The notes under the pieces: generated by a model | Told to the model about the DNA's origin: nothing | The model's input: the letters and a program-made list of their open reading frames with translations, nothing else | The model's database searches: none | Virus record (IMG/VR): IMGVR_UViG_3300009545_000018 | Span: 1 to 64,000 of that record | Reading direction: 5' to 3' (one strand) | DNA length: 64,000 bases | Shown here: positions 1,338-57,160 of the stretch, in pieces | Numbering within the stretch: the first letter of the stretch is position 1 | Layout of the letters: every line of letters starts with the position of its first letter | Position numbers and translations under genes: made by a program

Positions 1338-1367
1338 CCCATCGAATAACGGAAGGAAGCGTATAGC

Positions 1368-1577
1368 ATGAGCCGAGACAATTTCATTGTTCAATTAGAT
1401 AATGCTTTAACTCTGCTGCGGATGACGCAACTGCGGCACAAAATGACAGGTCCTGAACTAAGCCTGTTAAACCTAGCAGTTCATCATGCCATTACCAAGA
1501 TTGATCAAGCGATTGGTCCTCCTGGTTTCGATACAGCGGCAGCATTTGAAGAATTCTTCGGACGCCCTTTGGAGTGA
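1368..1577 (+). CDS. hypothetical protein (leaderless-type)
   Basis: ATG 30 nt after motif start. Confidence 0.75.
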   Translation: MSRDNFIVQLDNALTLLRMTQLRHKMTGPELSLLNLAVHHAITKIDQAIGPPGFDTAAAFEEFFGRPLE

Positions 1578-1584
1578 GAAGTTT

Positions 1585-1617
1585 AAGGAGACTGGAAACA
1601 GTCTCCTTTTTCTTTTT
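1585..1617 (+). terminator. Rho-independent terminator
   Basis: AAGGAGACTG-GAAA-CAGTCTCCTT followed by a T-tract. Confidence 0.85.
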
Positions 1618-1625
1618 GTGGCTGG

Positions 1626-1660
1626 TGGTATTGTCTTTGCATATTGCATGACTCATGCCA
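1626..1660. promoter_or_regulatory. Face-to-face pair of sigma54-like -24/-12 sites, copy 1
   Basis: TGGTATTGTCTTTGCA (+, 1626-1641) and TGGCATGAGTCATGCA (-, 1645-1660), both GG-N10-GC. Confidence 0.55.
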
Positions 1661-1812
1661 CATACCGACAAATACCTCCCATCTAATAACGGTAAGGAAC
1701 CACTAATTGATTCTAGCTACTAAGAGTTAGCCTTAATAGTAGTTAGAAGTTGTACCATATGCTAACTATATGGTGCCCCATCTAATAACGGTAAGAGACA
1801 CCAAGTAAAAAC

Positions 1813-2055
1813 ATGCAAAAAGAATACTTCAAAGACATCGTAAGTAAATTGCCAGCCGAATCTTTTGCGGCTGAAGAGTTGCTTGTCATGGCAAGGCATC
1901 AATATCTGGAATGTGCTAAGGATTGTCTTAAACCAGGACGCGGCAAGAGTGACAATGAAGTTGGGTTTTATGCGCTCGAAGCTGCCATTCAACTACAAGA
2001 AACTATCGATGTTTTATTCTGGGATAAGAAAACTTCCCATCCAGTAACTGGTTAA
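1813..2055 (+). CDS. hypothetical protein, paralog of 38099..38314
   Basis: Shared ARHxYLxxAKDxLK...G...A...LQxxID. Confidence 0.8.
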   Translation: MQKEYFKDIVSKLPAESFAAEELLVMARHQYLECAKDCLKPGRGKSDNEVGFYALEAAIQLQETIDVLFWDKKTSHPVTG

Positions 2056-2065
2056 AGTATTAGTC

Positions 2066-2275
2066 ATGGCTGCTAAATGCAAAGGTTACAAGTTTGCGGT
2101 TGAATGTTGTGCTTTCAACGATGAATCTGCTGAGACAGATCTTGAAACCATATCGCAAACCATTAGTGTTAGTTTAGTAGCCGATTTGTTTGGAATACCT
2201 GCCGAAAAAGTAGCCGCTGCTGTTTTGAAGGTTCGCAATAAATCGGACAACTGGATCGATATTGGATATGAATAA
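2066..2275 (+). CDS. hypothetical protein
   Basis: ATG 30 nt after motif. Confidence 0.75.
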   Translation: MAAKCKGYKFAVECCAFNDESAETDLETISQTISVSLVADLFGIPAEKVAAAVLKVRNKSDNWIDIGYE

Positions 2276-2332
2276 TTTTGGGTATCTACCTTAAGAAAAT
2301 AACCCATCCTTTAACGGATAGAGATATTGAAT

Positions 2333-2515
2333 ATGAGAGATAATCAAATCGCAACAACTGAAGATGGTAGGATTTCCATTCCAGACGTTCAAATTTTCCG
2401 AGTAGAAAATGGTTGGAAGCCGGTACCACTACCAGGCTACAGTTATATTGTGGCGGTAGTTAATATGCAAGGTACTTGTATTGGTTGGATGAAGAATCCC
2501 AATCCCATCTTTTGA
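2333..2515 (+). CDS. hypothetical protein
   Basis: Start revised to the ATG 30 nt after motif 2303. Confidence 0.7.
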   Translation: MRDNQIATTEDGRISIPDVQIFRVENGWKPVPLPGYSYIVAVVNMQGTCIGWMKNPNPIF

Positions 2516-2533
2516 CGGATAGATATATCCTAT

Positions 2534-2761
2534 ATGACAATCTCTAGTGATATGAGTCGAGAGTGGGAATTGGAAGGTAAGCTGCATAGAACAGCAGGCG
2601 ATGCTTTTCGGCAATTAGTGCCATCTAAAGGCGGATGTTTGGTAGCAGCCACTGATGTTTATCTCCTGGCTCTTAAAACAGAGTTGCATAAGTGGATTGC
2701 TGAGATTGATCAAGAGTTACAAGAACGTTGTCAAGAAGAGAGCGACAATGAGTTTGGATGA
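2534..2761 (+). CDS. hypothetical protein
   Basis: ATG 30 nt after motif. Confidence 0.75.
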   Translation: MTISSDMSREWELEGKLHRTAGDAFRQLVPSKGGCLVAATDVYLLALKTELHKWIAEIDQELQERCQEESDNEFG

Positions 2762-2915
2762 ATTAAAAGAAAAGATTATTGCAACAGCTTTGGAATGGCG
2801 ATACTTGGATGAAATCGAGCCCATTCCCAGTAACAAGCCGGGCGAGAAACTGAGGGAGCTAGCTTTTCTACTAGATGAATTGAATGAATCCCATCTTATA
2901 ACGGATAAGTCATAA
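2748..2915 (+). CDS. hypothetical protein
   Basis: Internal ATG (MSLDELK) overlapping the end of the upstream gene. Confidence 0.6.
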   Translation: MSLDELKEKIIATALEWRYLDEIEPIPSNKPGEKLRELAFLLDELNESHLITDKS

Positions 2916-2920
2916 CAGTT

Positions 2921-3265
2921 ATGAAGTCTTTCAAAGTTGCTGCCAAAGAAGTGAAATGGTTGACTGAGCCAGCCTTTGCTAGCAAGAAACGAACCGTGAC
3001 AATTGAAGTCTCGGAAACCGTTAGCTTTTATAATACCTTCTGGGATGGTGGTAGTAAGAATACTTACAGGGCTGTTCGTCTGCTAGACGGCAAGGTAGCT
3101 GAACTGGAAACTGGTTCAAGTCCTTGGGCGGCTATTGCTGAGGGCAAAAGCATGACACTAGAGCCCGGCATTGCCATCGTAGAGGAAAGTGTTTTCTGTG
3201 GTAAAATAATGCCACTCAGGATTCATTTGCATCCTTCTAATATCACTCCCTTTCTCAAGGAGTAA
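2921..3265 (+). CDS. hypothetical phage protein (WDGGSK motif)
   Basis: ATG 31 nt after motif; 114 aa. Confidence 0.8.
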   Translation: MKSFKVAAKEVKWLTEPAFASKKRTVTIEVSETVSFYNTFWDGGSKNTYRAVRLLDGKVAELETGSSPWAAIAEGKSMTLEPGIAIVEESVFCGKIMPLRIHLHPSNITPFLKE

Positions 3266-3297
3266 TTCCCATCTTCTAACGGCAGAAGAGAATCAAT

Positions 3298-3513
3298 ATG
3301 ACAGAGCAAGAAATTTTAGATATGTGTGCTAAATATACTACGGTTGACAATGCTATTAGGTTGTTTAATAGTGGTCTTTTAGACACTATGTCTACTGCTT
3401 TGCTGAAGACTTGCCGTTATATTCGGTTTCAAGATGGTCATTATCGGGCGACACATGAAGGCGTTCTAGCTGGATTGAAATTTAATATTCAGATTCAAAA
3501 GATTGGGATTTGA
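3298..3513 (+). CDS. hypothetical protein
   Basis: ATG 30 nt after motif. Confidence 0.75.
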   Translation: MTEQEILDMCAKYTTVDNAIRLFNSGLLDTMSTALLKTCRYIRFQDGHYRATHEGVLAGLKFNIQIQKIGI

Positions 3514-3547
3514 TTATCCCATCTAATGACGGAAAGGTATAACTATC

Positions 3548-3892
3548 ATGGGTTGGTCTTGTAGAGCAGAAGCCGGAAATACTTTGAATGCGTGGCAAGA
3601 TGCTTGTTTTGCCCAAACTGGAATGGCTAATGTCTTTCTGAGTAAGGGAGGTAGCGAGCGCAATCAATTTGCTGGTGGTTCTAAGTACATGTTTGAAGTC
3701 TCCAATAAAGAGCATCATGATGGCGCCATTACTGGCAGCATTCAGCGCTTCGTTGATGACACTCACGTAGTTAAAGCTGGTAGCTTTCGAATTGAACCAG
3801 ACGGCACTGTGAGTAGGGCTCCTGCCTTTCTCAAAGCTATCAAGGGAAAGCTACTAACTAGAAACGGTATTGGTTCTGGTGGTCCCATCTAA
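3548..3892 (+). CDS. hypothetical protein
   Basis: ATG 30 nt after motif; stop codon lies inside the next motif. Confidence 0.8.
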   Translation: MGWSCRAEAGNTLNAWQDACFAQTGMANVFLSKGGSERNQFAGGSKYMFEVSNKEHHDGAITGSIQRFVDDTHVVKAGSFRIEPDGTVSRAPAFLKAIKGKLLTRNGIGSGGPI

Positions 3893-3913
3893 TAACGGAA
3901 TAAACCAATTAGT

Positions 3914-4138
3914 ATGAGTTTAATAACAGAACTTTCTTCTCTGAAAAAAGAGATCAATGAAATTTTCAATTCTAATATGTCATGGGAATTGAAGTATGAT
4001 TTGATCTTTAGCGAGAAGCTTTCACAACAAGTCTTCGAACTAGTCGATCTGGATTACTACGATCCTGATACTACCTATGAGGAAGACGTTACAGCTTTTG
4101 TCAAAGCCCTTAATGACAAATGTCAAGATCTATCATGA
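3914..4138 (+). CDS. hypothetical acidic protein (YYDPDTTYEED)
   Basis: ATG 30 nt after motif. Confidence 0.8.
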   Translation: MSLITELSSLKKEINEIFNSNMSWELKYDLIFSEKLSQQVFELVDLDYYDPDTTYEEDVTAFVKALNDKCQDLS

Positions 4139-4416
4139 AAAAAGAAACCTATCAAGCCGCCCGAAATCGTTTGATCCAAGAATTCAAAGACTTGGGATTT
4201 GTTGTCAAGGATACTTTAAAGGTTCCTCAAGTGGAATTGCCTACTGGCGAGACCCTTTTGTTCAAGGCACAAGCTGTCTACACCAAAAGCAACAAGCTTT
4301 CATTGTGGGTTGACATTCGTGGTATGAGTGCTAGGCAGCTAGCTATTAAAGCTGGCGTTCTGGTATCTACCTTGAATTGGATTGATGGCACGTCTCCTTC
4401 ACTTAAAGTAAAATAA
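4135..4416 (+). CDS. hypothetical protein
   Basis: ATGA coupling to upstream stop. Confidence 0.7.
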   Translation: MKKETYQAARNRLIQEFKDLGFVVKDTLKVPQVELPTGETLLFKAQAVYTKSNKLSLWVDIRGMSARQLAIKAGVLVSTLNWIDGTSPSLKVK

Positions 4417-4570
4417 TGTGTTCTAAATTATTCTACCAATTGGTCTGGAATTCCTTTGATGCTGCATTCAAAGAATATGTGTGGCATCAACACCATGCCA
4501 AACGTGATCATTGGCAATATTACTATCTAGGTTGTTAATCCCATCTACTAACGGATATACACATATGAAT

Positions 4571-4954
4571 ATGGAACTAACAATTCAATGTCCTCTGTAC
4601 CGAATTTCCTACCTACTATGTAGTGCCTTTGAAGGCGGAAGTAATTACTGGTACTCAATTAATTCCGACACTCCTCCACCCAATGGCGTTGATCTTTCCG
4701 CCTTTGACGGTCATTGGGACACAGTATATGCACATGTGCATTATCCCTTGTGTGCGGGGGGCAGCCTCACCATTAAAGATATGGAAGATAACAACAAAAC
4801 CTATACTCTATCTTTGAAAGAAATTGAACACGGGCTGAAAGTCTTCGCTGAGAAGTATCCTCGCCATTTTGGCAATTGGCTGAGTGAAGATGATGATGCT
4901 ATTACTGGCGATGTATTCTTACAATGCTGTCTTTTTGGTGAAGCTAAATACTAA
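4571..4954 (+). CDS. conserved-type phage hypothetical protein (EGGSNYW...DAITGDVFLQxxLFGE)
   Basis: Start revised to the ATG 31 nt after motif 4540. Confidence 0.8.
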   Translation: MELTIQCPLYRISYLLCSAFEGGSNYWYSINSDTPPPNGVDLSAFDGHWDTVYAHVHYPLCAGGSLTIKDMEDNNKTYTLSLKEIEHGLKVFAEKYPRHFGNWLSEDDDAITGDVFLQCCLFGEAKY

Positions 4955-4989
4955 TAATCCCATCTTTTAACGGTCTATACAGGTATAGT

Positions 4990-5274
4990 ATGAAACGTCT
5001 TAATCCCGACAAGATGCAAGCTGTAATTGAAAGCCTACAAAAGTGTGACGATTGCAGCAATTTCGCTACAACCAAAACTGGTGTTTGGGATTGCGAAGAG
5101 CACAATCTCTGTGACTTTCATTTGAAAGAACGTCGTACGGCACTTGTTGCGCGCTATGGTGATTCTTCCAAAGGAGATTGGGAAGTAGAATACCCTTATG
5201 CTAATGCCTTGCGCGCCCTATTTAATGTAACAGAGATTCCAACTGTTATTCATGACGATACTCCCATCATTTAA
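4990..5274 (+). CDS. hypothetical protein with CxxC...CxxH
   Basis: ATG 31 nt after motif. Confidence 0.75.
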   Translation: MKRLNPDKMQAVIESLQKCDDCSNFATTKTGVWDCEEHNLCDFHLKERRTALVARYGDSSKGDWEVEYPYANALRALFNVTEIPTVIHDDTPII

Positions 5275-5292
5275 CGGATAGAGATTGATACT

Positions 5293-5517
5293 ATGAAGAT
5301 TGAACAATTCCTATGGAAAACAGTTGTTAAAACTGGTCGAGAAGCTGACTTACTATTGCAACAACAACTTGTTCGTATTGTTAGTCCTAGCAAGACAACT
5401 GACGGACCAGGTTGGGATCGATTAGCAGAGTTTAATGAGGTTGTAAAGCCAACTGATACTGTCATGGTTTTCGACAAGAAAATTGGTTGGCAGACTATCA
5501 ATCATCCCTCGGAATAA
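5293..5517 (+). CDS. hypothetical protein
   Basis: ATG 30 nt after motif. Confidence 0.75.
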   Translation: MKIEQFLWKTVVKTGREADLLLQQQLVRIVSPSKTTDGPGWDRLAEFNEVVKPTDTVMVFDKKIGWQTINHPSE

Positions 5518-5519
5518 AT

Positions 5520-5756
5520 ATGTTGAAATGTATTAAAGTAGCTGATTACAGGAGGATGCCATTAGAAGTACGTACTTCTACTCTCTGCTACTTACGTGAT
5601 TTTTTTGGTGCGCCAGTAGGAACCTACTACATGAAAACGGTTCCAGGTCCAGCTGACAATAGTAGCTATCCTGCTTTAGATAATTGGTTAGTATCAGAAG
5701 GAGCCTTGTTAGGTGAGCCAGTTCTGATTAAGTTTGATAAGGTACCCATCTTTTAA
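5520..5756 (+). CDS. hypothetical protein
   Basis: ATG 2 nt after upstream stop. Confidence 0.65.
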   Translation: MLKCIKVADYRRMPLEVRTSTLCYLRDFFGAPVGTYYMKTVPGPADNSSYPALDNWLVSEGALLGEPVLIKFDKVPIF

Positions 5757-5774
5757 CGGATACAAATAACAAAT

Positions 5775-5894
5775 ATGCTGACAAATTATCACAAACAAAC
5801 TTGGCGTGGTAAAGTGTTCTTTTGGGCGACCTTACCACTAGCAATTGTTATTGTATCAGCAATGGCAGTAAAAGATCATTTCAATCGAGAATAG
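5775..5894 (+). CDS. 39-aa small membrane protein (not in ORF track)
   Basis: MLTNYHKQTWRGKVFFWATLPLAIVIVSAMAVKDHFNRE; ATG 30 nt after motif 5745, stop just before motif 5897. Confidence 0.7.
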   Translation: MLTNYHKQTWRGKVFFWATLPLAIVIVSAMAVKDHFNRE

Positions 5895-5926
5895 ATCCCA
5901 TCTGCTAACGGACGCTACCATTTGAT

Positions 5927-6136
5927 ATGACAAGGTTCGCAATTAAGAAGGGTGACAAGTTGATTTGTCTTACAACAACTCGCACAGACGGAAGCACGTT
6001 TAAGTGTTTCTATCTTTTCGAAACGGCAGCTGATTGGAATCTGTATAATGCATCTGGTAAACAGAAGTCTAATGTAGTTCGCACCTATGAAGAATATGAT
6101 GGTGAGAGCACTGTAGTTACTAACAATGGTGATTGA
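5927..6136 (+). CDS. hypothetical protein
   Basis: ATG 30 nt after motif. Confidence 0.75.
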   Translation: MTRFAIKKGDKLICLTTTRTDGSTFKCFYLFETAADWNLYNASGKQKSNVVRTYEEYDGESTVVTNNGD

Positions 6137-6174
6137 ATTTCCCATCTAATGACGGAAGTTATAATAGTTTTAAG

Positions 6175-6444
6175 ATGCCCGAAGAAAAAACAGTTGCGCA
6201 AAGGTTTGCAGAAAAAGCCAATCAAATAAATCTTGCCAAGATTGCAAGGGAAAAAGAATCTGCTGAAGAATCTTACAATAAGATCTTGAATCTTATAGAA
6301 GAAGAATCTCAAAAGGGCGAATATAAACTTGCCCTTCCTCCTAATTGTAATCCATCTTCTTTTCTTCGAGAAAGAATTTGTAGTGATGGATTTGATCTTA
6401 CATGCTTTGATAAAGTGTGGATTATTTCTTGGCAAAATAAATAA
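6175..6444 (+). CDS. hypothetical protein, distantly similar to 60857 and 61156
   Basis: Start revised; shared I...A/S.KG...GF...ISW pattern. Confidence 0.7.
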   Translation: MPEEKTVAQRFAEKANQINLAKIAREKESAEESYNKILNLIEEESQKGEYKLALPPNCNPSSFLRERICSDGFDLTCFDKVWIISWQNK

Positions 6445-6614
6445 TGAAAAATATTTTACGTACTTTTCATCATTGGGTAGAGCGCCCTTGTGTTGCTGTA
6501 ATTTATCGACAGAATCGTGCTCGACGTGAAAGGCAAGACTTTAAAGCGCCTTGGTGGTTTTCTTTAGCATCCAAGGTAGAATTCAAGCTACGCTATCTTT
6601 ACAAAAAATCTTAA
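6444..6614 (+). CDS. 56-aa hypothetical protein (not in ORF track)
   Basis: TAATG coupling; stop abuts motif 6616. Confidence 0.55.
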   Translation: MKNILRTFHHWVERPCVAVIYRQNRARRERQDFKAPWWFSLASKVEFKLRYLYKKS

Positions 6615-6645
6615 TCCCATCTGATAACGGAGTCAACCAGTTATT

Positions 6646-6897
6646 ATGACTAAAATAGTTAGTATTTATAAATGCCAAGATGATACATTTAAAGTAGATC
6701 TTTCAATATCTTTTCAAGTTATTACTAATGGTTATTTTACTCCAGAGCAAGATGCTACTTTCAAAATTAGACACTTGAGGGGCTTTACTCAAGAGCAAGC
6801 GGAATCTATTGTAGGCTTGGTAAATAGTTGTTATGACATGGGTTATGTGCAAGCTCAACGAGACCTTGCCAATCGTTTAGGTTTTAGGTTTAAATAA
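6646..6897 (+). CDS. hypothetical protein
   Basis: ATG 30 nt after motif. Confidence 0.75.
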   Translation: MTKIVSIYKCQDDTFKVDLSISFQVITNGYFTPEQDATFKIRHLRGFTQEQAESIVGLVNSCYDMGYVQAQRDLANRLGFRFK

Positions 6898-6963
6898 CCC
6901 ATCGGATAACGGCGTGAGATAACAAACGAGTCTTGCAAAAACCAAAGGAAAACAAAACTGTCA

Positions 6964-7110
6964 ATGAGTTTTAATCAGCAAACGGTTTCTAGACTAGGTG
7001 TCGCTAATCGTCCGGGCGACTATGATGCCAAAACCTTTATGGCAAAGGGGCGGCGTGCCAAAGATCGAAACGAGCAAATGTTTGCTATCAATGGATATAC
7101 TGTCGTCTGA
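6964..7110 (+). CDS. 48-aa hypothetical protein (not in ORF track)
   Basis: Motif 6898, AAAGGA SD-like sequence, MSFNQQTVSRLG... Confidence 0.55.
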   Translation: MSFNQQTVSRLGVANRPGDYDAKTFMAKGRRAKDRNEQMFAINGYTVV

Positions 7111-7292
7111 CTGCTATTCGAAATGATTTGAGTTTACTAGTTAAGTAAATATTACAATTAAATACTAAGCATGACATGTAGGCAGAGTCTTTAAACGCCT
7201 ATTGTCTCAATAAGACATAGAGGGTTTGGTGATCTCCCAAGAGTGAAAACACCATTTTATTTCCCATCTTTTAACGGATGTATGCAACAAGT

Positions 7293-7541
7293 ATGACTAA
7301 GAAAGAAAAAATTAAGTTTCTTCAATCTCTTGTTAAAGATCCAGATATGCTTGGACATGCACGCCAATCAATTGAAGATCATTTGATTGAGTTTCGTGAT
7401 AGGAGAATTTCTCAACCGTTTCGTGGCAATGGTCTGGTTGTTAGGGAACCTAACGGTAAACCTTCTGATATTATCAGACTTGGTACGGAAGATGCTGTTC
7501 GAATTGGTTTGCTTGCTATTATTGAGAAGTTAAATGGTTAA
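7293..7541 (+). CDS. hypothetical protein
   Basis: Start revised to the ATG 30 nt after motif 7263. Confidence 0.8.
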   Translation: MTKKEKIKFLQSLVKDPDMLGHARQSIEDHLIEFRDRRISQPFRGNGLVVREPNGKPSDIIRLGTEDAVRIGLLAIIEKLNG

Positions 7542-7857
7542 GACAGTTCAACAAATTTTGTACATGACTACTTACACTCCCAGCATTCGTTCTGAGGTAG
7601 ATGGCTGGACTTTTGAATGTGGTGATGTTGATATGGATAAGGTGCTTCAAGATCCCAACATTCATGTTGGATTTTTGAAAGGTTGGGAGGCGGGACTTTA
7701 TTATCATCCCAAAACTCCCGCCCATGCTTTACGATTAGGTTGGAAGCTTTTGGCTCCACCAGAAAAATTTGACATGGGTTTAGAAAAATATCCTTGGGGT
7801 TGGCACTGGATTATGGTTAGGGAAGTAGAAACCAACATGCTAGGTGCTTATAAATGA
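7534..7857 (+). CDS. hypothetical protein
   Basis: Overlap-coupled ORF. Confidence 0.75.
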   Translation: MVKTVQQILYMTTYTPSIRSEVDGWTFECGDVDMDKVLQDPNIHVGFLKGWEAGLYYHPKTPAHALRLGWKLLAPPEKFDMGLEKYPWGWHWIMVREVETNMLGAYK

Positions 7858-8093
7858 AATATACTTTAATTGGTGGAATTACACTTAAATCAAACACTGG
7901 CACTACTACGTATACTGGTCTAAAAGTAATTGGTAGTTCTTACACCGAAAATGGAATCAAAGATTTATGGAATAAAAACTATGAAGCTTGCGGTGGACTA
8001 CTGCTAGTGCTAGATGCTGAAGGTCGAGAGACTTATCCAGAAATCATCTATGATGCGATTAAACACAAAGCAGCTTATCAAATCGAATCTTGA
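7854..8093 (+). CDS. hypothetical protein
   Basis: ATGA coupling; followed by terminator. Confidence 0.7.
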   Translation: MKYTLIGGITLKSNTGTTTYTGLKVIGSSYTENGIKDLWNKNYEACGGLLLVLDAEGRETYPEIIYDAIKHKAAYQIES

Positions 8094-8096
8094 ACT

Positions 8097-8132
8097 AAAG
8101 ACCCTGAGCTTAAACAGTTCGGGGTCTTTTTT
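8097..8132 (+). terminator. Rho-independent terminator
   Basis: AAAGACCCTGAGCT-TAAAC-AGTTCGGGGTCTTT plus T-tract. Confidence 0.85.
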
Positions 8133-8143
8133 ATTTTGAGGTA

Positions 8144-8178
8144 TGGTATTGCTTTTGCATAATGCAGCAATCGTACCA
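8144..8178. promoter_or_regulatory. Face-to-face pair of sigma54-like -24/-12 sites, copy 2
   Basis: TGGTATTGCTTTTGCA (+, 8144-8159) and TGGTACGATTGCTGCA (-, 8163-8178). Confidence 0.55.
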
Positions 8179-8320
8179 CCACCTACCACTACTTACAAAA
8201 TGCCACACTGAAACTATTGCTAGTGAAAAAGTGTCTCCCATCATCAAACGGCTGACGGCGCTATTTGCAACACAATGTCAGAATACCACACTGACAACAC
8301 CCTTACCTCAGGAATATGTA

Positions 8321-8548
8321 ATGAAAGTTTTTACTGACGAATTTGTAAACGCTGTTAAAGGCAAACTGGAAACTCTTCCGGATGGTGATTATTTGACGCG
8401 AGAGAAGCTTTGCATTGCCATTAACGTTCCAGCAGTGTATGCCAATGCCATTAGCATGTTGATGGCTCAACCGGAGTTTAGTGGTTTTGAAGCCGTCAAG
8501 AGCCGAGGCATTCGACGTAAAAAGATTCAGCCGATTGCTGCTGAGTAA
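8321..8548 (+). CDS. putative winged-helix DNA-binding protein
   Basis: AGGA SD; helical body with a basic wing FEAVKSRGIRRKK, resembling the 12403 family. Confidence 0.6.
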   Translation: MKVFTDEFVNAVKGKLETLPDGDYLTREKLCIAINVPAVYANAISMLMAQPEFSGFEAVKSRGIRRKKIQPIAAE

Positions 8549-8610
8549 TTTTGCTACAATAGCTCCCATCACATAACGGAACCTATTTCCTATCTAAAGG
8601 AGATAGGAAT

Positions 8611-8916
8611 GTGAAGATTAAAATTCCGTTTTACAATCGTCTGGGTCAACAAGTAGCTGAACTGGACCACGACATTGGTCGTGGTTTTTTCTTAGTTGAA
8701 TTTCAGCAACCATTACAAAATAGGGAAGTAAGAATTTTCCCTTATAAATGGGAGATTACCGAAGATAACGGGCAAAGCGCTGCTGGAGCTTTAAAAGAAG
8801 CTCTCCGCTTTGCCTGTGATCTGCAAAAGAATTCCCATCCTCAACGGATGCTGATGCTTAATGTTCTTGGAGATAATCTCCGAAAGATAATTCATACACT
8901 TCATAGTAGGAACTAA
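8611..8916 (+). CDS. hypothetical protein
   Basis: GTG start with AGGA SD after motif 8565. Confidence 0.7.
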   Translation: MKIKIPFYNRLGQQVAELDHDIGRGFFLVEFQQPLQNREVRIFPYKWEITEDNGQSAAGALKEALRFACDLQKNSHPQRMLMLNVLGDNLRKIIHTLHSRN

Positions 8917-9066
8917 TATGCAACTTCCTCCTCTAATTGATTTTAATTTAGTGTTTGTTCCTTTTGCCAAAATTCATTTTGATGTAACGGCTAATTGCAT
9001 TGATAGTGTAGTTTACATCTTTGGAATTAGAGTGGCATATTGGGTAGCACTTAGGGAAATTTAATA

Positions 9067-9414
9067 ATGAATATCGATCCTGTTCGAGAAAATCTATTAA
9101 AAAGTTATTCTTCCAGAGAATATGGAACTTGGGAGATTTTGGGCGAAGATCCTAATTGTGATTTTAGTGGACCTCATAGTCAACCACGACTAATGATTGT
9201 AACTGGAACTTATCACAATGTGATAGAATATGCCTTGTCACTCAAAGGATTTATCCAGTGGGGTACCGGCGGATCTATCAATAAGATTATAGCGAGGCTA
9301 GATGTTGATCATCTTTATTCTGCTGAAGCTGCAGAGCTAAAGAATAAAAAAGCAAAGCTAGAAAAAGAATTGGCTGAAATTTCTTCCAAACTGGAAAAGA
9401 TTTACAAAAAATAA
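9067..9414 (+). CDS. phage hypothetical protein (GEDPNCD motif, C-terminal coiled coil)
   Basis: 115-aa ORF ending at motif 9417. Confidence 0.8.
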   Translation: MNIDPVRENLLKSYSSREYGTWEILGEDPNCDFSGPHSQPRLMIVTGTYHNVIEYALSLKGFIQWGTGGSINKIIARLDVDHLYSAEAAELKNKKAKLEKELAEISSKLEKIYKK

Positions 9415-9447
9415 TTCCCATCTATTAACGGACGTGTGTCTCTTAAC

Positions 9448-9708
9448 ATGAAGAGTCAAGTTTACAGCATCTTAAGCGGAGAGCAGATTGAAGTTACTTT
9501 CCCAAGTACTTTAGCTCCACCCAGTAAGCATCCATTACGTCGCCATTCTGGTGTTATCGTAAAGAATAGTCTGACCAATAAGATCGAAACTGGAACTATT
9601 GTCTCTCACTTGACACTAAGTGAATGGTCAGTAGTCAATGGCTACCAAGTTATCGACTATGGGCGTACCTATAAGGCTCGTCCAAGTGAAATAACACGGT
9701 TGTTTTAA
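9448..9708 (+). CDS. hypothetical protein
   Basis: Start revised to the ATG 31 nt after motif. Confidence 0.75.
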   Translation: MKSQVYSILSGEQIEVTFPSTLAPPSKHPLRRHSGVIVKNSLTNKIETGTIVSHLTLSEWSVVNGYQVIDYGRTYKARPSEITRLF

Positions 9709-9759
9709 CCGCAGAATTTAACTGCGCCGCACTTACCCATCCTATAACGGACCACAATA

Positions 9760-9996
9760 ATGAATGTATTATTCGATAATGCCTGCGGTAAGTTTCATAT
9801 TTGTGCTATTGAAAGATTCAATGGTGGAAAGATTAGTGAATGCGCTGTAATCTATCGATATGGTGCTGTAGTACTAAAAGAACTTACCTTTCCTCCGGAG
9901 AAGAGCCAGGTTGCAATCGATATTGCTTCACATATTTTTGATGCGATTGAAACATATCATGATTATGTCGTCTGTGATTTTGCTGACAGTATGTGA
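9760..9996 (+). CDS. hypothetical protein
   Basis: Bounded by motifs 9736 and 9997. Confidence 0.7.
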   Translation: MNVLFDNACGKFHICAIERFNGGKISECAVIYRYGAVVLKELTFPPEKSQVAIDIASHIFDAIETYHDYVVCDFADSM

Positions 9997-10026
9997 CCCA
10001 TCAAATAACGGAATGATTCATAAGTT

Positions 10027-10275
10027 ATGACACAATTTCATCGTAGGAGTGTTGGTAACTACCAAATTGTAGTAAAAGAGGATACTCATGGCTATCCAGT
10101 TTTGGAATATGGTTATGGTGAAAATCCAAAACAACTTCGCCACTTTCATAAAAATGAAATTGGAACTGCAGTAGACGAAGCTAATTTCATTGCAGACATA
10201 ATTAAAGAATATCGTAGTAATTTAGTAAATCAAATCGGAAAACTGTTACAAGAAGAATATATTACTAAATTGTAA
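10027..10275 (+). CDS. hypothetical protein
   Basis: ATG 30 nt after motif. Confidence 0.75.
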   Translation: MTQFHRRSVGNYQIVVKEDTHGYPVLEYGYGENPKQLRHFHKNEIGTAVDEANFIADIIKEYRSNLVNQIGKLLQEEYITKL

Positions 10276-10648
10276 TCCCATCAATTAACGGATGAATATT
10301 TAAAATGAAATTAAAGAATATCTGGAAAAGAATCAAAGATTATATTTTAGATGTTAAAGCCACTTGGGACTACACTACCAATGAAGGTGGGCAATTTGGG
10401 GCAGCAGATATTCCTGATAAAAATTTAAAGCAAGAAAAAGAATCATAACAAACGAGTAAATTTGATATGTCACGTCGTATTACAGAGCTAGCAGTCATTC
10501 AAAAACAAGATCCTACTCGTCTTAGAATCCGAACCGTTGAGACGGAACGACGGAAGCAGGTTAAGTCTCGAGCCCGCCGTAAAGAAGCTTGGCGCAAAGA
10601 TCCCATCAATTAACGGCAGAAAGACATAAAACAGAAGGAGAAAAGAAA

Positions 10649-10831
10649 ATGCTGAAATATCTAGTAATCGGTCTGGCAATGATTGGCAGTGCATATCTTC
10701 TGATGGTATATGCCAATCCGCTCTGGCAAAAGGTAGCATTCACCACAAATCTAACCGGGGCAGTTTCATATGCCACTTGTGTTTTGATTGCTGTTGCGTG
10801 TTTCCTGTTTACCAAACTTGCCACTAAGTAA
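10649..10831 (+). CDS. small two-TM membrane protein
   Basis: AAGGAG SD; two hydrophobic segments. Confidence 0.75.
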   Translation: MLKYLVIGLAMIGSAYLLMVYANPLWQKVAFTTNLTGAVSYATCVLIAVACFLFTKLATK

Positions 10832-10850
10832 AAATAAACAAGACTCTTTT

Positions 10851-10960
10851 GGGTTGAACCTAACTAGCCACTACATAGCAGTAAATCCTTATTAGGTTGC
10901 TACAAGTAGCAAGACAGGCAAGTCAGCTGGCATTAGGCTGTAAGAGTGTGCTCTAAACCC
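10851..10960 (+). ncRNA. candidate multibranch structured RNA
   Basis: GGGTT/AACCC closing stem around several hairpins (AACCTAA/TTAGGTT, TGCTAC/GTAGCA, AGAG/CTCT). Confidence 0.35.
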
Positions 10961-10975
10961 ACTATTGTAAATTAC

Positions 10976-11149
10976 ATGAAATTCAATAATAAAACTCACC
11001 TTTACGATCCTCAGTGTACTTGTCACGCTTGTTCTCAATTTGAGATTAGCTTGAAAGACATGATTCAAAGGGAACGGGAATATCGTCCTCATTGGTCGGA
11101 GCTGGGACGACCCGTATCTGAAAAGACTTTCAAGAAACCCATCGCTTAA
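10976..11149 (+). CDS. hypothetical protein (CxCxxC)
   Basis: Internal ATG; stop inside motif 11138. Confidence 0.55.
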   Translation: MKFNNKTHLYDPQCTCHACSQFEISLKDMIQREREYRPHWSELGRPVSEKTFKKPIA

Positions 11150-11162
11150 CGGATAAGACACT

Positions 11163-11579
11163 ATGATTGAACTTGGAAAGAAAGTTAGGTTTGAATACGA
11201 TAACAATTACTACGCAGGTATTGTTATTATTATCAATCATGCATTAACAAATTGTATTGTATCTAGTCTTGATCCTATTTTAAATAATCCTGTATTTGAA
11301 GCTTGCCAACTAGGCGATCACGTAGATAAAAGTTGGTGTGGTAATCATTTTGAGTGTGTGGATAATATCTCTGATTACCATCATAAGTGGCATGGTTGGT
11401 TTCAAATGGGTGATCTTGAAGTTGTTGAGCCTCAGGTGTTTTCTCCACGCACAGACACTATTGATGGTTGCAATTGCAAGACTTGCGGTCAGTTCACTTT
11501 TATGGCAGCCGCTAATCAAAGTGATGGAACCTTCAAGTGTTATTCGTGTAGAAATAATCCAATTCGAACGTACTACTAA
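11163..11579 (+). CDS. protein with C-terminal zinc ribbon (CxxC...NQxDGTFxCxxC)
   Basis: Module shared with 22991 and 60348. Confidence 0.8.
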   Translation: MIELGKKVRFEYDNNYYAGIVIIINHALTNCIVSSLDPILNNPVFEACQLGDHVDKSWCGNHFECVDNISDYHHKWHGWFQMGDLEVVEPQVFSPRTDTIDGCNCKTCGQFTFMAAANQSDGTFKCYSCRNNPIRTYY

Positions 11580-11611
11580 TTCCCATCCATTAACGGATTG
11601 AACTAAATAGT

Positions 11612-11920
11612 ATGACTGAATGGAATAAAGAAAAACTCATCAATCTACTTACAGTCAATGATAAAGCTGTAGAGCTTGCCATTGTAATTATCTACAATCG
11701 CCAGACTTTAGAGGAACAATCTTTGGAAAAAACTAAACATCACAATGGAATTGGTTTCACAGGATGGCACGCTAGTCTAGGAACCTATTACGCAAAATGG
11801 ATTTTGCGAGGTAAGTCTCTTAGTGGTCAGCAGCTAGCCAAAGCTCGTAAGATTGCTTTGAGTTATACGTCTCAGCTCTTGGACGAAATTAAGAGCAAAC
11901 AACATCATGCCGCTCTATAG
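11612..11920 (+). CDS. phage hypothetical protein, paralog of 28747..29049
   Basis: NDKAV...QTxEEQ...NxxGF...ARxIALxY. Confidence 0.85.
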   Translation: MTEWNKEKLINLLTVNDKAVELAIVIIYNRQTLEEQSLEKTKHHNGIGFTGWHASLGTYYAKWILRGKSLSGQQLAKARKIALSYTSQLLDEIKSKQHHAAL

Positions 11921-11927
11921 GGCGGAA

Positions 11928-52946: not shown

Positions 52947-52953
52947 GTATAAT

Positions 52954-53240: not shown

Positions 53241-53255
53241 CCCATCAGTAGACGG
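53241..53255 (+). promoter_or_regulatory. variant motif CCCATC-AGT-AGACGG
   Basis: Two mismatches; precedes a non-coding hairpin tract. Confidence 0.55.
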
Positions 53256-54909: not shown

Positions 54910-54913
54910 AAAT

Positions 54914-55243
54914 ATGATAATAGATTTATGTGATTTTCTAAAAGATAAACCACATATTTATGTGTCTGATTATAGCATAAACTATGGAAATAGTATTAGG
55001 TTTGTAGATGATAATGTAACAGGATTTCTATTTAATATAGAGGTCGGTGATAAATTTATTATTGAATTGTTTAAAAATCCTAATAGAGTAAAATATTACG
55101 GGTACCACATAATAATCTGGGATCATGAAAATGATTCTTCTATTTATGAAAAAGATAATATTACAGGCTCTTTAATCAAAGAGGAATTAATCAACTGTAT
55201 CACATATTGTGAAAAATATTTAAATTTAATTGTCTTCTCATGA
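54914..55243 (+). CDS. KAFx-tail protein
   Basis: ...KYLNLIVFS. Confidence 0.7.
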   Translation: MIIDLCDFLKDKPHIYVSDYSINYGNSIRFVDDNVTGFLFNIEVGDKFIIELFKNPNRVKYYGYHIIIWDHENDSSIYEKDNITGSLIKEELINCITYCEKYLNLIVFS

Positions 55244-55542
55244 ATTCATTTTTACAATTAGATTGTGGAAAATATCCATATTATTTAGCAAACTATTATA
55301 ATTATAGTATTAGTTATTTATTAGAAAATAATATAGAAGGCATTGTTTTTAATATAAATTTTCATCAACATAAAGTAAGTGTAATTTTTTCTTATGAAGA
55401 AAAATTATATGCTATATATTGTAGTACTAATAAAATGGTTGTTAATATATATGATTGTTATTCATTAAAACAAACATTAAATAAATGTCAAGAGTTAATT
55501 AATTATTATACTAGAATTGATAAATTGAAATCATTTTCATAA
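55240..55542 (+). CDS. KAFx-tail protein
   Basis: ...IDKLKSFS. Confidence 0.7.
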   Translation: MNSFLQLDCGKYPYYLANYYNYSISYLLENNIEGIVFNINFHQHKVSVIFSYEEKLYAIYCSTNKMVVNIYDCYSLKQTLNKCQELINYYTRIDKLKSFS

Positions 55543-55546
55543 AATT

Positions 55547-55903
55547 ATGTTTGATAGAGAACTGCTTAAAAAAGAATATTATTCTAAGTTAAATCTTAAT
55601 GGTGGAGAATTATATTTAAACTCTTCTTTTCAAAAAGATTTTAATAAATATTATGGATATATGTCTATCGTATATAAAAGTTTTAGTATAGAGGTATTAA
55701 GAGTTCCACATTTATTTAAAATAAATAACTTCAAAATTAAAGTTTGGGATCATACAAAAATATATTATAATCATTTTGCGGGAGATTATTATAAGTGTCA
55801 TTTAGAAATTATCCATATACCAAAATCTCATTTATTAAATGAGCTTCAAAAGCAAATTGATTTCTTTCATAGAAGATATATTAAACTAGCAGCTTTTACA
55901 TGA
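55547..55903 (+). CDS. KAFx-tail protein (LxxxGG class)
   Basis: LNLNGG...YIKLAAFT. Confidence 0.75.
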   Translation: MFDRELLKKEYYSKLNLNGGELYLNSSFQKDFNKYYGYMSIVYKSFSIEVLRVPHLFKINNFKIKVWDHTKIYYNHFAGDYYKCHLEIIHIPKSHLLNELQKQIDFFHRRYIKLAAFT

Positions 55904-56217
55904 GTGATGTTTTCAAAAAATCATATTATAATCTTTTAGATTTAAAAGGTGGCAAAATAGATATTTGTGACTTTAACATTAAATATTTTAATAACTATAA
56001 TAATTATGTTACCATACTAAATATTAATTATGAAAAATACTATATATCATTAACTCATCAAACGAATATGATCTTCGCAGTTCATACTTTATTTTTTAAT
56101 TCTTTTGATACTCCTAGTAGTACTTATAATGTAAACAAATATAGTGTACTTACAACATTGCAAAACACTATTAATTTTAATTATAAAAAATATATAAAAC
56201 TGTCAGTATTTACATAA
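55900..56217 (+). CDS. KAFx-tail protein (LxxxGG class)
   Basis: LDLKGG...YIKLSVFT. Confidence 0.75.
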   Translation: MSDVFKKSYYNLLDLKGGKIDICDFNIKYFNNYNNYVTILNINYEKYYISLTHQTNMIFAVHTLFFNSFDTPSSTYNVNKYSVLTTLQNTINFNYKKYIKLSVFT

Positions 56218-56220
56218 CCT

Positions 56221-56473
56221 ATGAATGAATTAAAAGTATTACAAGATCAAATAATTAATTTTAGTTTCGATAAATTCAATTGATCAACGTACTTATACTA
56301 AAAGTATGTTCATTGAATATGAATTATTTGCTTTATATTTTGTATTTGATGAATTAAATAATTTACTTAAAGCAAATACGGCTTATATTTCAGACTTATA
56401 TCATTATGAAGAATGGACAGAAATTAAAAAATTTTCCTCCATAGAAGATATACAAAATATTATAGATGAATGA
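56221..56473 (+). pseudogene. broken paralog of 56466..56744
   Basis: Stop at 56281; a second frame from 56306 gives YISDLYHYEEWTEIK...DIQNIID, matching FISDLYTNIKWTKIK...DVQPTID; tail missing. Confidence 0.55.
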
Positions 56474-56744
56474 TTATTTAATTAAATTTTCTAAATCATT
56501 AAATTATCATAGTGGACATTTTAGTATTATTAGCAATAGTATTTATGTTGATTCTCCTAAAAAAATTTTAGATTATAAAATATGTTTTAATTTTACGAAT
56601 AAAACAATTTTCATTTCTGATTTATATACAAACATAAAATGGACTAAAATTAAAGATAATTTTACAGAAAAAGATGTGCAACCAACAATAGATTTTTATT
56701 ATAATTATTATAATAAGTTACAAAAACTAAAGTCATTTATTTAA
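56466..56744 (+). CDS. KAFx-tail protein
   Basis: ...LQKLKSFI. Confidence 0.75.
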   Translation: MNDYLIKFSKSLNYHSGHFSIISNSIYVDSPKKILDYKICFNFTNKTIFISDLYTNIKWTKIKDNFTEKDVQPTIDFYYNYYNKLQKLKSFI

Positions 56745-56758
56745 AAGGAATAACAACA

Positions 56759-57118
56759 ATGAAAACTCGCATTATGTATCTACGTGACAATAACAATCCA
56801 CAAGGCAAAGGTAATCCAATTGGATGCCTAGCTATTGATGTTCTTAAGGGACAAGACAATCGAATTGCTATTAACTACCAAGTATCTGTACTGCACCCTA
56901 CCGATGTATTTGATCGTAAGTTAGGTCAATTAAAAGCTACTAGTAAGTTAGATGGTTCACCTATTTGTGCCGATGTAGTCTTCGAAAATGACATTTCAAT
57001 ACATCAAGTATCTTCTATTGTTATGAACCATTTGGTTAGTAATAAGAAAGTTCCAACGCGGGCGCGCAAAGCAGCCGCTCGTTGGCTAGTTAATGCTAAT
57101 AATTTAGTTACAAAGTAA
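56759..57118 (+). CDS. hypothetical phage protein
   Basis: AAGGA SD; P.D.FDRK.G...A motif. Confidence 0.8.
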   Translation: MKTRIMYLRDNNNPQGKGNPIGCLAIDVLKGQDNRIAINYQVSVLHPTDVFDRKLGQLKATSKLDGSPICADVVFENDISIHQVSSIVMNHLVSNKKVPTRARKAAARWLVNANNLVTK

Positions 57119-57123
57119 TAAGA

Positions 57124-57160
57124 GAACTTCCCATCGTATAACGGTGGGAAGCTTCTTTTT
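57124..57160 (+). terminator. terminator-like hairpin containing a CCCATC-N3-TAACGG motif (57130)
   Basis: CTTCCCATCGT-ATA-ACGGTGGGAAG, T-tract follows. Confidence 0.6.

Follow-up and report, generated by a model that had tools for sequence, protein, structure and literature searches.

A putative per-gene promoter motif spaced for leaderless transcription in a huge soil phage

The region analyzed here, a 64,000-nt window, is the first 64 kb of a 447,763-bp contig of an uncultivated phage from a rhizosphere metagenome (IMG/VR record IMGVR_UViG_3300009545_000018). It opens with the 3′ part of a sulfatase gene (1-1337, + strand), whose 5′ part, together with its own copy of the motif described below (contig position 447,528, ATG at +46 with a Shine-Dalgarno (SD) site), lies at the other end of the contig, the ORF being in frame across the junction. 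A dense array of small genes follows (1338-12307, + strand), with about one copy per small ORF of the 15-mer CCCATC-N3-TAACGG. The 30 copies in this part start at 1338, 1678, 1777, 2036, 2303, 2504, 2890, 3268, 3518, 3884, 4540, 4959, 5263, 5745, 5897, 6141, 6616, 6898, 7263, 8237 (doubtful, with 1 mismatch), 8565, 9417, 9736, 9997, 10277, 10602, 11138, 11582, 12015, and 12293. A sparse tail of the same signal (14161-57144, + strand) holds 13 exact copies, starting at 14161, 15177, 15300, 17960, 18888, 21678, 24973, 27338, 28694, 31854, 38055, 45565, and 57130, most of which have longer inferred leaders with an SD site.

Individual units illustrate the arrangement. In a model unit with the ATG at +30, counted from the motif start (1338-1577, + strand), the stop codon of the preceding gene (1335-1337) abuts the motif (1338-1352), a 15-nt spacer follows, the ATG at 1368 opens a 69-codon ORF, and an intrinsic terminator lies at 1585-1608. 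A strong intrinsic terminator (14-bp stem followed by a T-run; 8097-8129, + strand) closes another unit before the next motif, and a similar one lies at 8664-8687. Conversely, in a model unit of the far class (10602-10831, + strand), an AGGAG core lies at offsets 33-38, after the predicted start, and the ATG is at +47; its paralogue in the contig end (433,607-447,763, hereafter L037; motif at L037 1868) is of the +30 class, and the two N-termini align within 3 residues. The motif also precedes RNA genes. The copy at 12015 is followed by tRNA-Leu(taa) at 12053-12137 (+ strand), placing the tRNA 5′ end at offset 38, and a second lineage (L355) has the same tRNA at offset 35. The copy at 31854 is followed by an ORF-free gap of about 330 nt (unit 31854-32170, + strand) that has a fold z-score of -2.8 and no Rfam match, and is therefore a plausible but unproven non-coding RNA.

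The observation in the earlier note, which counted 45 co-oriented copies, 31 of them in the first 12.3 kb, was confirmed and proved to be larger than reported. We found 38 exact copies in the window, all on the + strand, against 0 expected from shuffled sequences, and 45 copies at up to 2 mismatches, again all on the + strand, against 1.8 expected, of which 31 start at or before 12293. Two of these (642-656, inside the sulfatase ORF, and 53241-53255, 2 mismatches each) are at chance level and are not counted as part of the system, leaving 42-43 credible copies in the window. Across the contig junction the array continues into L037, the last 14 kb of the contig, which holds 40 more copies. The dense block thus spans about 26.5 kb with about 71 copies, and it starts abruptly, after a 550-nt non-coding region, where GC content jumps from 25-28% to 42%. 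Two more copies lie beyond the window at contig positions of about 71,737 and 76,021, whereas none was found in the 9.6 kb before the array or in 82-112 kb.

The position of the start codon relative to the motif is sharply defined. Among the 86 copies of the contig end and the window, all on the + strand, the ATG lies at exactly +30 in 36 and at +31 in 8; the chance of 36 of 86 ATGs at one given offset is about 1e-35. All 15 cases at +30 and all 4 at +31 that the earlier note had listed were verified, as was the pyrimidine before the ATG in all 19, although an earlier in-frame or out-of-frame ATG also exists for 7263, 9997, 17960, and 4540. The base before the ATG is a pyrimidine in 35/35 of the +30 class, against 18/54 for genes without the motif (p = 1e-11), and A at -3 and T at -4 are also enriched. 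Several findings indicate that the +30 ATG is the real start: it opens ORFs of 39-170 codons, the TAA of the motif closes that frame upstream, and paralogues expressed from +30 and from SD-led starts have aligned N-termini. Genes are tightly packed, the stop of the previous gene lying in the TAA of the motif in 18 cases and 3-5 nt before the motif in another 18. However, two window genes (9736 and 11138) have their only ATG at +24/+25. Gene duplication does not explain the array, as only 4 small paralogue families were found among 78 downstream proteins, about 70 of which are unrelated to each other.

Similar arrays were found in other phages. About 22 independent metagenomic lineages (GC 39-60%, no nucleotide similarity to one another) carry dense co-oriented arrays of the same 15-mer, with ATG occupancy at +29/+30/+31 of 14/21/27 of 173 copies, against about 3 at other offsets, and a pyrimidine before the ATG in 52/62. 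Where the ATG lies farther away, SD cores tend to lie just after +30. SD cores at offsets 30-36 occur in 30/163 far copies against 4/106 near copies (those with an ATG at +29 to +31; p = 3e-4), and are followed by an ATG 5-11 nt later, often as Y-TGAGG-N5-8-ATG, while SD cores are depleted at offsets 20-29. In the window, the claim that distant ATGs are accompanied by an AGGA-type SD holds for 10602, 12293, 15300, 28694, and 8237, but is weak for 6898, where AAAGGA lies 14 nt from the ATG, and absent for 21678.

Searches for RNA-level and host-type signals gave mostly negative results. The motif has no consensus fold and no covariation, and its fold z-score is -0.15. Sigma-70-like sites are not enriched (44 vs. 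40, 39 vs. 42), and no -10 hexamer appears in the sequence logo. In contrast, intrinsic terminators are enriched (17 vs. 9.9, 20 vs. 11.8), and complete motif-gene-terminator units exist. The suggestion that the motif is pseudo-palindromic is not supported, the two half-sites agreeing at only 3 of 6 positions on the opposite strand, and neither is the dimeric activator that was inferred from it. Likewise, the absence of an SD is not supported as a special mark of this class, because genes without the motif elsewhere in this phage also have weak SD sites; lack of an SD is therefore not by itself evidence for leaderless mRNA. No RNA polymerase, sigma-factor family, or known activator hit was found in the approximately 136 kb examined, 30% of the genome.

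The interpretation offered in the earlier note, a single element at about -30 to -16 that fixes the start site without a sigma-70 -10 box and is read by a phage-encoded RNA polymerase, sigma factor, or dimeric activator, is partly supported by these data. In the reading we favor, with a probability of roughly 0.55, the 15-mer is the upstream element of a phage-specific promoter read on double-stranded DNA, combined with a weak initiator. Numbered from the A of the ATG as +1, the element would comprise T at -31, CCCATC at -30 to -25, three free bases, TAACGG at -21 to -16, a purine-biased stretch at -13 to -11, and an AT-rich initiator region (Y-8, A-7, T-4, A-3, A-2, Y-1) followed by R at +1. 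A dedicated recognition protein, which could be a phage RNA polymerase or a phage specificity factor acting on an RNA polymerase, would bind the two hexamers, whose centers lie 9 bp apart on one face of the helix, and place initiation 15-16 bp downstream of the motif. While the anatomy, the statistics, the conservation across lineages, and the absence of RNA structure and of sigma-70 geometry were established directly from sequence, that the motif is a promoter, that initiation is at +30, that these are early genes, and that the motif is not read by the host sigma-70 holoenzyme are all inferences. Action on DNA is consistent with the strict co-orientation of the motif with genes and with its occurrence before a tRNA and before units that carry their own SD site. 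A start on the ATG is supported only indirectly, by the fixed spacing, the pyrimidine at -1, the shared ATG peak in unrelated lineages, and the SD cores after +30; no RNA run was listed, the only run found being the DNA source. Some observations fit this reading less well. A purine-rich or SD-like tract directly follows the motif (offsets 15-19) and is slightly commoner in the near class of the relatives (14/62 vs. 13/111, p = 0.08). Furthermore, in a subclade with spacer GCC (lineages L006, L025, and L095), several units read motif-AAAGGA-N8-9-ATG, with AAAGGA at offsets 17-22, and one has AGGAG at offsets 22-26 with the ATG at +35, which would need a start upstream of +20 or read-through transcripts.

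The main rival, less likely but still live, is that the motif is the same promoter with T7-like geometry, where the conserved block ends at the transcription start (the GG or the following A, offsets 13-16), and the mRNAs carry a fixed 15-17 nt leader that begins with purines and is translated by a weak, distant, or non-SD mechanism. Known promoters of single-subunit phage polymerases are conserved up to +1 and start with G followed by purines, and the purine bias at offsets 17-20, the GCC-spacer units, the ATGs at +24/+25 of 9736 and 11138, and the weak enrichment of SD cores at offsets 15-19 in near-class relatives would fit such a start. However, the hybridization energy of the 15-nt spacer to the anti-SD equals that of random 15-mers, and over all copies SD-like cores at offsets 15-19 are equally frequent whether or not an ATG follows at +29 to +31 (20/106 vs. 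31/163, p = 1). This model also does not explain the invariant pyrimidine at -1, the TAAT before the ATG, the 1-nt sharpness of the spacing, or why real SD cores avoid offsets 20-29 and pile up at 31-34. In addition, one copy (L037 3917) is followed at offset 20 by a complete terminator hairpin, such that a transcript starting at +14 would abort at once.

It is unlikely that the motif acts in RNA, either as a recognition site in long polycistronic early transcripts for an endoribonuclease that cuts about 15 nt downstream, producing leaderless mRNAs in the manner of mitochondrial tRNA punctuation, or by recruiting ribosomes directly to the next ATG. One signal per gene at a fixed distance from the ATG is what a translation or processing signal looks like, and the phage encodes translation-related proteins, namely a release factor, an aminoacyl-tRNA synthetase, and an early protein with an L7/L12-like fragment. 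The motif is also identical to positions 4-19 of the tRNA-Glu genes of some bacteria (acceptor-stem bases 4-7, U8, and the D-arm to G19), all 12 specified bases matching those of several marine bacteria and of Obscuribacterales genomes assembled from metagenomes. This is probably coincidence; half of the shared bases are universal tRNA positions, no tRNA follows in the phage copies according to ARAGORN, and only 15 nt separate the motif from the ATG. Against action in RNA, no cloverleaf or D-stem covariation was found, folding energy equals that of shuffled sequences, the motif precedes a tRNA, candidate small RNAs, and genes with their own SD site at variable distances, no other promoter type is enriched in the 550-nt non-coding region before the array, and complete motif-gene-terminator units exist. 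Least likely is a DNA site with another job (a cassette-boundary site for a recombinase or for recombination-driven shuffling of small genes, a binding site for a replication, packaging, or silencing protein, or a remnant of tRNA-Glu genes), since, although the motif sits exactly at gene boundaries, resembles part of tRNA-Glu, and flanks small, unrelated genes that vary highly between lineages in an array with a GC content unlike the rest of the genome, none of these explains the exact spacing to the ATG, the pyrimidine/purine step at the predicted start, or the SD pile-up after +30, no inverted repeat or second half-site as in attC-type sites was found, co-orientation with transcription is strict over about 90 kb, and ARAGORN finds no tRNA at any phage copy.

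Comparison with described systems reveals partial resemblances. Like the promoters of phage-encoded single-subunit RNA polymerases (T7, T3, SP6, and Syn5 type), the motif is a long, nearly invariant, strictly oriented consensus repeated many times in one phage genome, independent of host -35/-10 elements and with an AT-rich stretch just before the inferred start. Those promoters, however, are contiguous from about -17 to +6 and end at the start site, while here the invariant block is at -30 to -16, 15 poorly conserved bases precede the inferred start, copy number is far higher (at least 88, about one per gene), and no such polymerase gene was seen in the 30% of the genome examined. Early promoters of the virion RNA polymerases of phiKZ-like jumbo phages (AR9: AAATATATATTAT-N6-G(+1)) also have a highly conserved extended motif at a fixed distance upstream of the start and drive early genes independently of host sigma factors (PMC5312081). 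Those motifs are AT-rich and lie 6 nt from the start, AR9 5′ UTRs are 26-491 nt (PMC5312081), and no leaderless transcript was found in phiKZ (PMC8244752), whereas the motif here is G+C-rich, lies 15-16 nt from the inferred start, and half of the units appear leaderless. In T4 middle promoters, a phage-specific element centered near -30 to -20 (the MotA box, near -30) similarly replaces the -35 hexamer, and the phage shares a few T4-type genes (T4_Y16D, a SegE-like GIY-YIG nuclease, and an RNA ligase with the PHA02142 domain), but MotA promoters keep a canonical sigma-70 -10 TAnnnT at -12 to -7, which is absent here. Poxvirus early promoters (15-16 bp core at about -28 to -13 plus an initiator) and archaeal BRE/TATA promoters of leaderless genes have a similar geometry, with one compact upstream core about 15-30 bp before the start, a pyrimidine/purine initiator, and very short or absent leaders. 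This is analogy only; the sequences are unrelated, no homologous factors were identified, and the host is bacterial, judged from SD cores, intrinsic terminators, and bacterial-type tRNAs. In the promoter-early stem-loop (PeSL) cassettes of hyperplastic regions of T4-type phages, many small, unrelated early ORFs each carry their own copy of a repeated regulatory module, and the repeats could mediate shuffling of genes, but PeSLs are host sigma-70 early promoters paired with stem-loops, while here there is no sigma-70 geometry, usually no stem-loop, and the spacing to the ATG is fixed.

If the favored reading is correct, initiation would fall on the A of the start codon in about half of the units, making the mRNA leaderless, and in most others the transcript would start with an SD core and a leader of about 10-25 nt, or with a tRNA or a small RNA. 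In this view, internal cistrons have no usable ribosome-binding site and genes abut each other, so that each small gene needs its own promoter, which would explain one motif per gene. The array is a one-directional block, probably of early genes, with its own base composition and a motif density that decays into the following 60 kb. A 448-kb phage and about 22 unrelated-looking lineages from other metagenomes place the same 15-base signal in front of almost every small, probably early gene, spaced so that transcription most likely starts on the start codon itself, and this looks like an undescribed phage promoter type that would make leaderless or minimal-leader mRNAs in bulk.

The window corresponds to positions 1-64,000 of JGI contig Ga0105237_10000004 (IMGVR_UViG_3300009545_000018), a 447,763-bp contig from a rhizosphere metagenome. 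The contig derives from a huge phage that consists of long one-directional runs of small genes, with four tRNAs in the window and scattered phage-type genes (R2K ATP-grasp, RNA ligase, DUF7275, T4_Y16D, and GIY-YIG and HNH nucleases). A SegE-like GIY-YIG homing endonuclease on the opposite strand (57854-58528, -) and an HNH endonuclease (27748-28233, +) both lie inside the otherwise one-directional gene run. Standard stop codons apply; no stop-codon reassignment lengthened the ORFs convincingly, and the region is simply made of small genes. No close cultured relative was found, as megablast returned no nucleotide match in the phage collection and protein searches gave only distant hits at 26-51% identity. 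Sinorhizobium phage Phosso (469 kb) shares a glutathionylspermidine synthase, but its first 50 kb has no motif above chance.

The observation made in the earlier note, a co-oriented CCCATC-N3-TAACGG motif at a fixed distance from start codons, is confirmed and extended. The motif occurs 38 times exactly and 45 times with up to two mismatches in the window, always on the + strand, whereas shuffles give 0 and 1.8, respectively. The note's list of copies with ATG at +30 and +31 and its claim that a pyrimidine precedes these ATGs are correct, although two of the 45 copies (642 and 53241) are at chance level. The window shows only half of the feature. The last 14.7 kb of the contig (segment L037) holds 40 more exact copies, all on the + strand, and the array begins abruptly at contig position 433,607, with no copies in the preceding 9.6 kb. 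GC content steps sharply from 25-28% to about 42% exactly where the array begins, then decays back to about 30% over the window, and a 550-nt non-coding stretch with a G+C-rich patch precedes the first motif (positions 9047-9600 of L130, another segment of the contig; contig 433,054-433,607). The array runs across the contig junction to about 12.3 kb, with roughly 71 copies in 26.5 kb, and then thins out to 13 exact copies up to 57 kb, 2 in 64-82 kb and none in 82-112 kb.

A terminal repeat or genome end at the contig junction was considered and rejected. A phage-borne, secreted-type sulfatase (PF00884) with an N-terminal extension and a Gly-rich linker is split by the contig ends (window 1-1337 plus L037 14537-14726), and its ORF runs in frame across the junction. 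At least four assemblies (JGI, a second JGI sample, ENA and Logan) break at this same G-rich tract, and depth is similar on both sides (17.3 vs 21.4). The junction is best explained as an assembly gap in the Gly-rich linker and not as a proven genome end.

The anatomy of the element was taken from the 35 exact-motif copies of the +30 class, numbered with the A of the ATG as +1. It comprises T at -31 (29/35), an invariant CCCATC at -30 to -25, three free bases, an invariant TAACGG at -21 to -16, A at -15, purines at -13 to -11, Y at -8, A at -7, T at -4 (25/35), A at -3 (30/35), and a pyrimidine at -1 (35/35), followed by the ATG and A at +4 (25/35). Among 54 called genes without the motif, the base at -1 is a pyrimidine in only 18 (p = 1e-11). 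Over all 86 copies in the contig end and the window, the ATG sits at +30 in 36 and at +31 in 8, and the chance of this at one offset is about 1e-35. Starts at +30/+31 in this phage are ATG only (37 ATG, 0 GTG or TTG), which lends indirect support to leaderless mRNAs. These ATGs open ORFs of 39-170 codons, and the motif's own TAA closes the same frame upstream. The stop codon of the previous gene is the motif's TAA in 18 cases and lies 3-5 nt before the motif in another 18; genes and signals are packed without spacers. Only four small paralogue families exist among the 78 downstream proteins, and the repeats are therefore not a by-product of duplication; within those families, one member can be of the +30 class and another led by a Shine-Dalgarno (SD) site, with N-termini aligning within 3-4 residues. 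Three paralogous proteins of about 120 aa (12403-12759, 15401-15766 and 21746-22141) all sit behind motif copies with unusually long leaders (+110, +101 and +68), which hints at a shared regulatory leader.

Similar arrays are present in other lineages. In IMG/VR, the strict pattern (motif, 14 N, TATG) is multi-copy only in this phage and in a 99.98% identical contig from another sample, while three larger contigs (L006, L025 and L095) carry a variant with the fixed spacer GCC. A paired-motif scan of metagenome contigs returned 36 loci, from which 4 loci of this same contig, 8 tandem tRNA-Glu arrays and 1 unrelated hairpin repeat were removed. With the three IMG/VR contigs added, about 22 lineages remain, with no nucleotide similarity to each other and GC of 39-60%, each with dense co-oriented arrays of up to 27 copies in 8.8 kb. 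The relatives come from soil and groundwater sites, and the long ones are IMGVR_UViG_3300023213_000432 (327 kb), 3300023212_000371 (198 kb) and 3300023212_000464 (118 kb). In their 173 unique copies, ATG occupancy is 14, 21 and 27 at +29, +30 and +31, against about 3 elsewhere, and the preceding base is a pyrimidine in 52/62. A paired-motif scan of bacterial genomes returned only tRNA-Glu arrays of Obscuribacterales genomes assembled from metagenomes, and so gave no host information.

A search for RNA sequencing runs listed none, the single DNA run being the probable source of the window, and the position of the transcription start is therefore inferred. A start at about +30 is favored by the 1-nt sharpness of the ATG peak, the pyrimidine/purine step and the AT-rich last 7 bp. 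In copies whose ATG lies farther away, SD cores are depleted at offsets 20-29 and pile up at 31-34, followed by an ATG 5-11 nt later, often as Y-TGAGG-N5-8-ATG (30/163 far copies against 4/106 near copies, p = 3e-4). The purine tract right after the motif is not tied to the +30 ATG when all copies are pooled (p = 1), and the 15-nt spacer pairs with the anti-SD no better than random sequence does. However, other data speak against a start at about +30: in the relatives alone there is a weak trend for SD cores at offsets 15-19 in the near class (p = 0.08), the GCC-spacer subclade has units that look like motif-AAAGGA-N8-9-ATG and one with AGGAG at offsets 22-26, and two window genes have their only ATG at +24/+25. 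Terminator hairpins after the motif were of little use in locating the start, as only 2 of 251 copies have one. At L037 3917 a full terminator hairpin starts 20 nt after a motif; upstream transcripts would stop there, whereas a transcript started at +30 would lack the hairpin's 5′ arm. Intrinsic terminators in the array (L037 3917-3968, L037 7585-7615 and L130 11601-11617) share the loop TGTAAT.

The motif fits a promoter better than a processing or ribosome-recruiting signal. RNAalifold found no structure, folding energies equal those of shuffles (z = -0.15), and no column, including those downstream, covaries with the free N3. The motif precedes tRNA-Leu in two lineages, a candidate small RNA, and SD-led genes at variable distances, and complete motif-gene-terminator units exist. 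The candidate small RNA is an ORF-free gap of about 290 nt after a motif copy (31884-32170), which folds better than every shuffle (z = -2.8) and matches no Rfam family. At 8565-8690, a hairpin after a motif copy sequesters an AAAGGAG core, followed by ATG/GTG and then by a strong terminator about 100 nt downstream; this could be a short regulatory RNA or a small-peptide unit rather than a 101-aa ORF.

The element has neither sigma-70 nor sigma-54 geometry. A sigma-70 promoter has a TTGACA-like -35 hexamer, a 16-18 bp spacer and a TATAAT-like hexamer at -12 to -7, but here the two conserved hexamers are only 3 bp apart, the logo at -12 to -7 reads R-A-K-R-Y-A with T at -7 in only 7/35, and consensus sites are not enriched (44 vs 40.0 ± 7.9 and 39 vs 42.2 ± 7.9). 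Sigma-54 promoters have GG at -24 and GC at -12 within TGGCAC-N5-TTGC; the sequence does not match, and the element ends 15-16 nt before the inferred start, not 11-12. T4 middle promoters combine a MotA box at -30 with a sigma-70 -10 element, which is absent here, and no MotA or AsiA family hit was found in the genes seen. The early motifs of phiKZ and AR9 virion RNA polymerases are AT-rich, about 13 nt long and 6 nt from the start, with leaders of at least 26 nt and no leaderless transcripts (PMC5312081; PMC8244752). The present motif differs in composition and spacing, and no hit to the split beta/beta′ genes was found in the part of the genome examined; scans of IMG/VR with back-translated NADFDGD were dominated by giant viruses and uninformative. 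T7-type promoters have a conserved block contiguous with, and including, the start site; the block here ends at offset 14, and its distance from the start is inferred only. By analogy only, the geometry is closest to that of poxvirus early promoters and archaeal promoters. A literature search found no paper with this motif or this architecture.

No candidate for the protein that would read the motif emerged from the regions examined. In about 136 kb of the genome (424-447.7 kb and 1-112 kb, with 70% of the genome outside this range), precomputed Pfam calls and our own scans showed no RNA polymerase, sigma factor or known activator, and among the called genes there was no RNA_pol family hit of the kind expected for a T7-like enzyme. 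PHROGs and ESM Atlas searches on the larger unannotated proteins gave nothing relevant. A 551-aa protein without a Pfam hit (positions 10356-12011 of contig segment L375; contig about 72.2-73.9 kb) has as its nearest ESM Atlas clusters PEP-utilising/PPDK_N enzymes, the family that includes rifampicin phosphotransferases, but this is a lead only (score 0.90). The 136 kb does hold translation-related and metabolic genes, including a Ro60-like protein and methyltransferases. At L130 1353-2432, L375 14817-16436 and L001 3184-3519 (L001 being a further segment of the phage), there are a release-factor homologue (about 40% identical to bacterial RF2), a class II aminoacyl-tRNA synthetase and a protein with a tRNA-binding domain. 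An early gene under the motif (L037 7876-8244; contig about 440.9 kb) encodes a 122-aa coiled-coil protein with a partial L7/L12 C-terminal domain (E = 3.6e-6, just above the Pfam cut-off), which could bear on translation of leaderless mRNAs. The reader of the motif could be encoded in the remaining 70% of the genome, be too divergent to detect, or be packaged in the virion.

The counts, spacing and base composition of the element are direct observations on sequence, while its action as a promoter, the position of the start, and the leaderless state of the mRNAs are inferred from them. We consider the promoter reading likely (about 0.8), and a promoter with a start on or next to the ATG somewhat more likely than not (about 0.55). 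The interpretation in the earlier note, that a single element at about -30 to -16 fixes the start site without a sigma-70 -10 box through a phage-encoded RNA polymerase, sigma factor or dimeric activator, is supported in part: the promoter reading stands as likely, but the two hexamers are not a palindrome, contrary to the note's pseudo-palindrome, so a symmetric dimer is not indicated. The main rival, which we find less likely but retain, is a T7-like start at the motif's 3′ end, with which the units in L006, L025 and L095 would fit, while the indirect evidence favors +30. A processing or ribosome-recruiting signal is improbable though not excluded. A tRNA gene or tRNA-like punctuation element, which would have a cloverleaf or at least paired acceptor and D stems, is not supported, as ARAGORN and Rfam found tRNAs only at four other places in the window and at no phage copy in the relatives. 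The 12 specified bases of the motif, and in Obscuribacterales genomes also the preceding T, are identical to positions 3/4-19 of tRNA-Glu genes (L349 4031-4533, -, a tandem tRNA-Glu locus; also loci L356, L366, L368, L372 and L373; compare the window copy at 1338-1352), a region covering the 5′ strand of the acceptor stem, U8 and the D-arm, and tandem tRNA-Glu arrays were the only non-phage hits of the paired-motif scans. This is probably coincidence, because half of these positions are universal in tRNAs, but it is unexplained. An integron attC-type site, with imperfect inverted repeats, core and inverse core, of 55-140 bp that fold as a hairpin, can be set aside, as the element is a 15-bp asymmetric sequence with no partner repeat and no folding signal.

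Phage-specific promoters as such are already known, and what differs here is the motif and its architecture, with a real chance of something more unusual. A more far-reaching and doubtful possibility is that a widespread clade of uncultivated phages, this 448-kb genome among them, carries its own transcription machinery with a promoter geometry otherwise known from archaea, eukaryotes and poxviruses, namely a compact core at -30 to -16 plus an initiator. In this view, the clade uses one promoter per gene to express about 70 early genes as leaderless mRNAs, early expression would be independent of both the host sigma factor and SD-dependent initiation, and early phage-encoded translation components could help this along.

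The motif gives a simple sequence rule for finding gene starts that gene callers miss. The automatic gene calls of the source metagenome (JGI) skip many of the +30-class ORFs (L130 10001-20372 and window 1-12,300), leaving gaps between called genes where a motif followed by an ATG opens an ORF of 50-100 codons. It also gives a marker for a phage clade found in metagenomes from many different projects, and a handle for finding the responsible polymerase or specificity factor through protein families that co-occur with the arrays. A compact 30-bp orthogonal promoter that yields leaderless transcripts would also be useful as a tool. If the inferred start site is right, the recognition element would sit 15-16 bp upstream of the start with no -10 box, a geometry that no characterised bacterial or phage RNA polymerase is known to use, and this would be the first phage system known to express a whole early gene block as leaderless mRNAs from a dedicated promoter.
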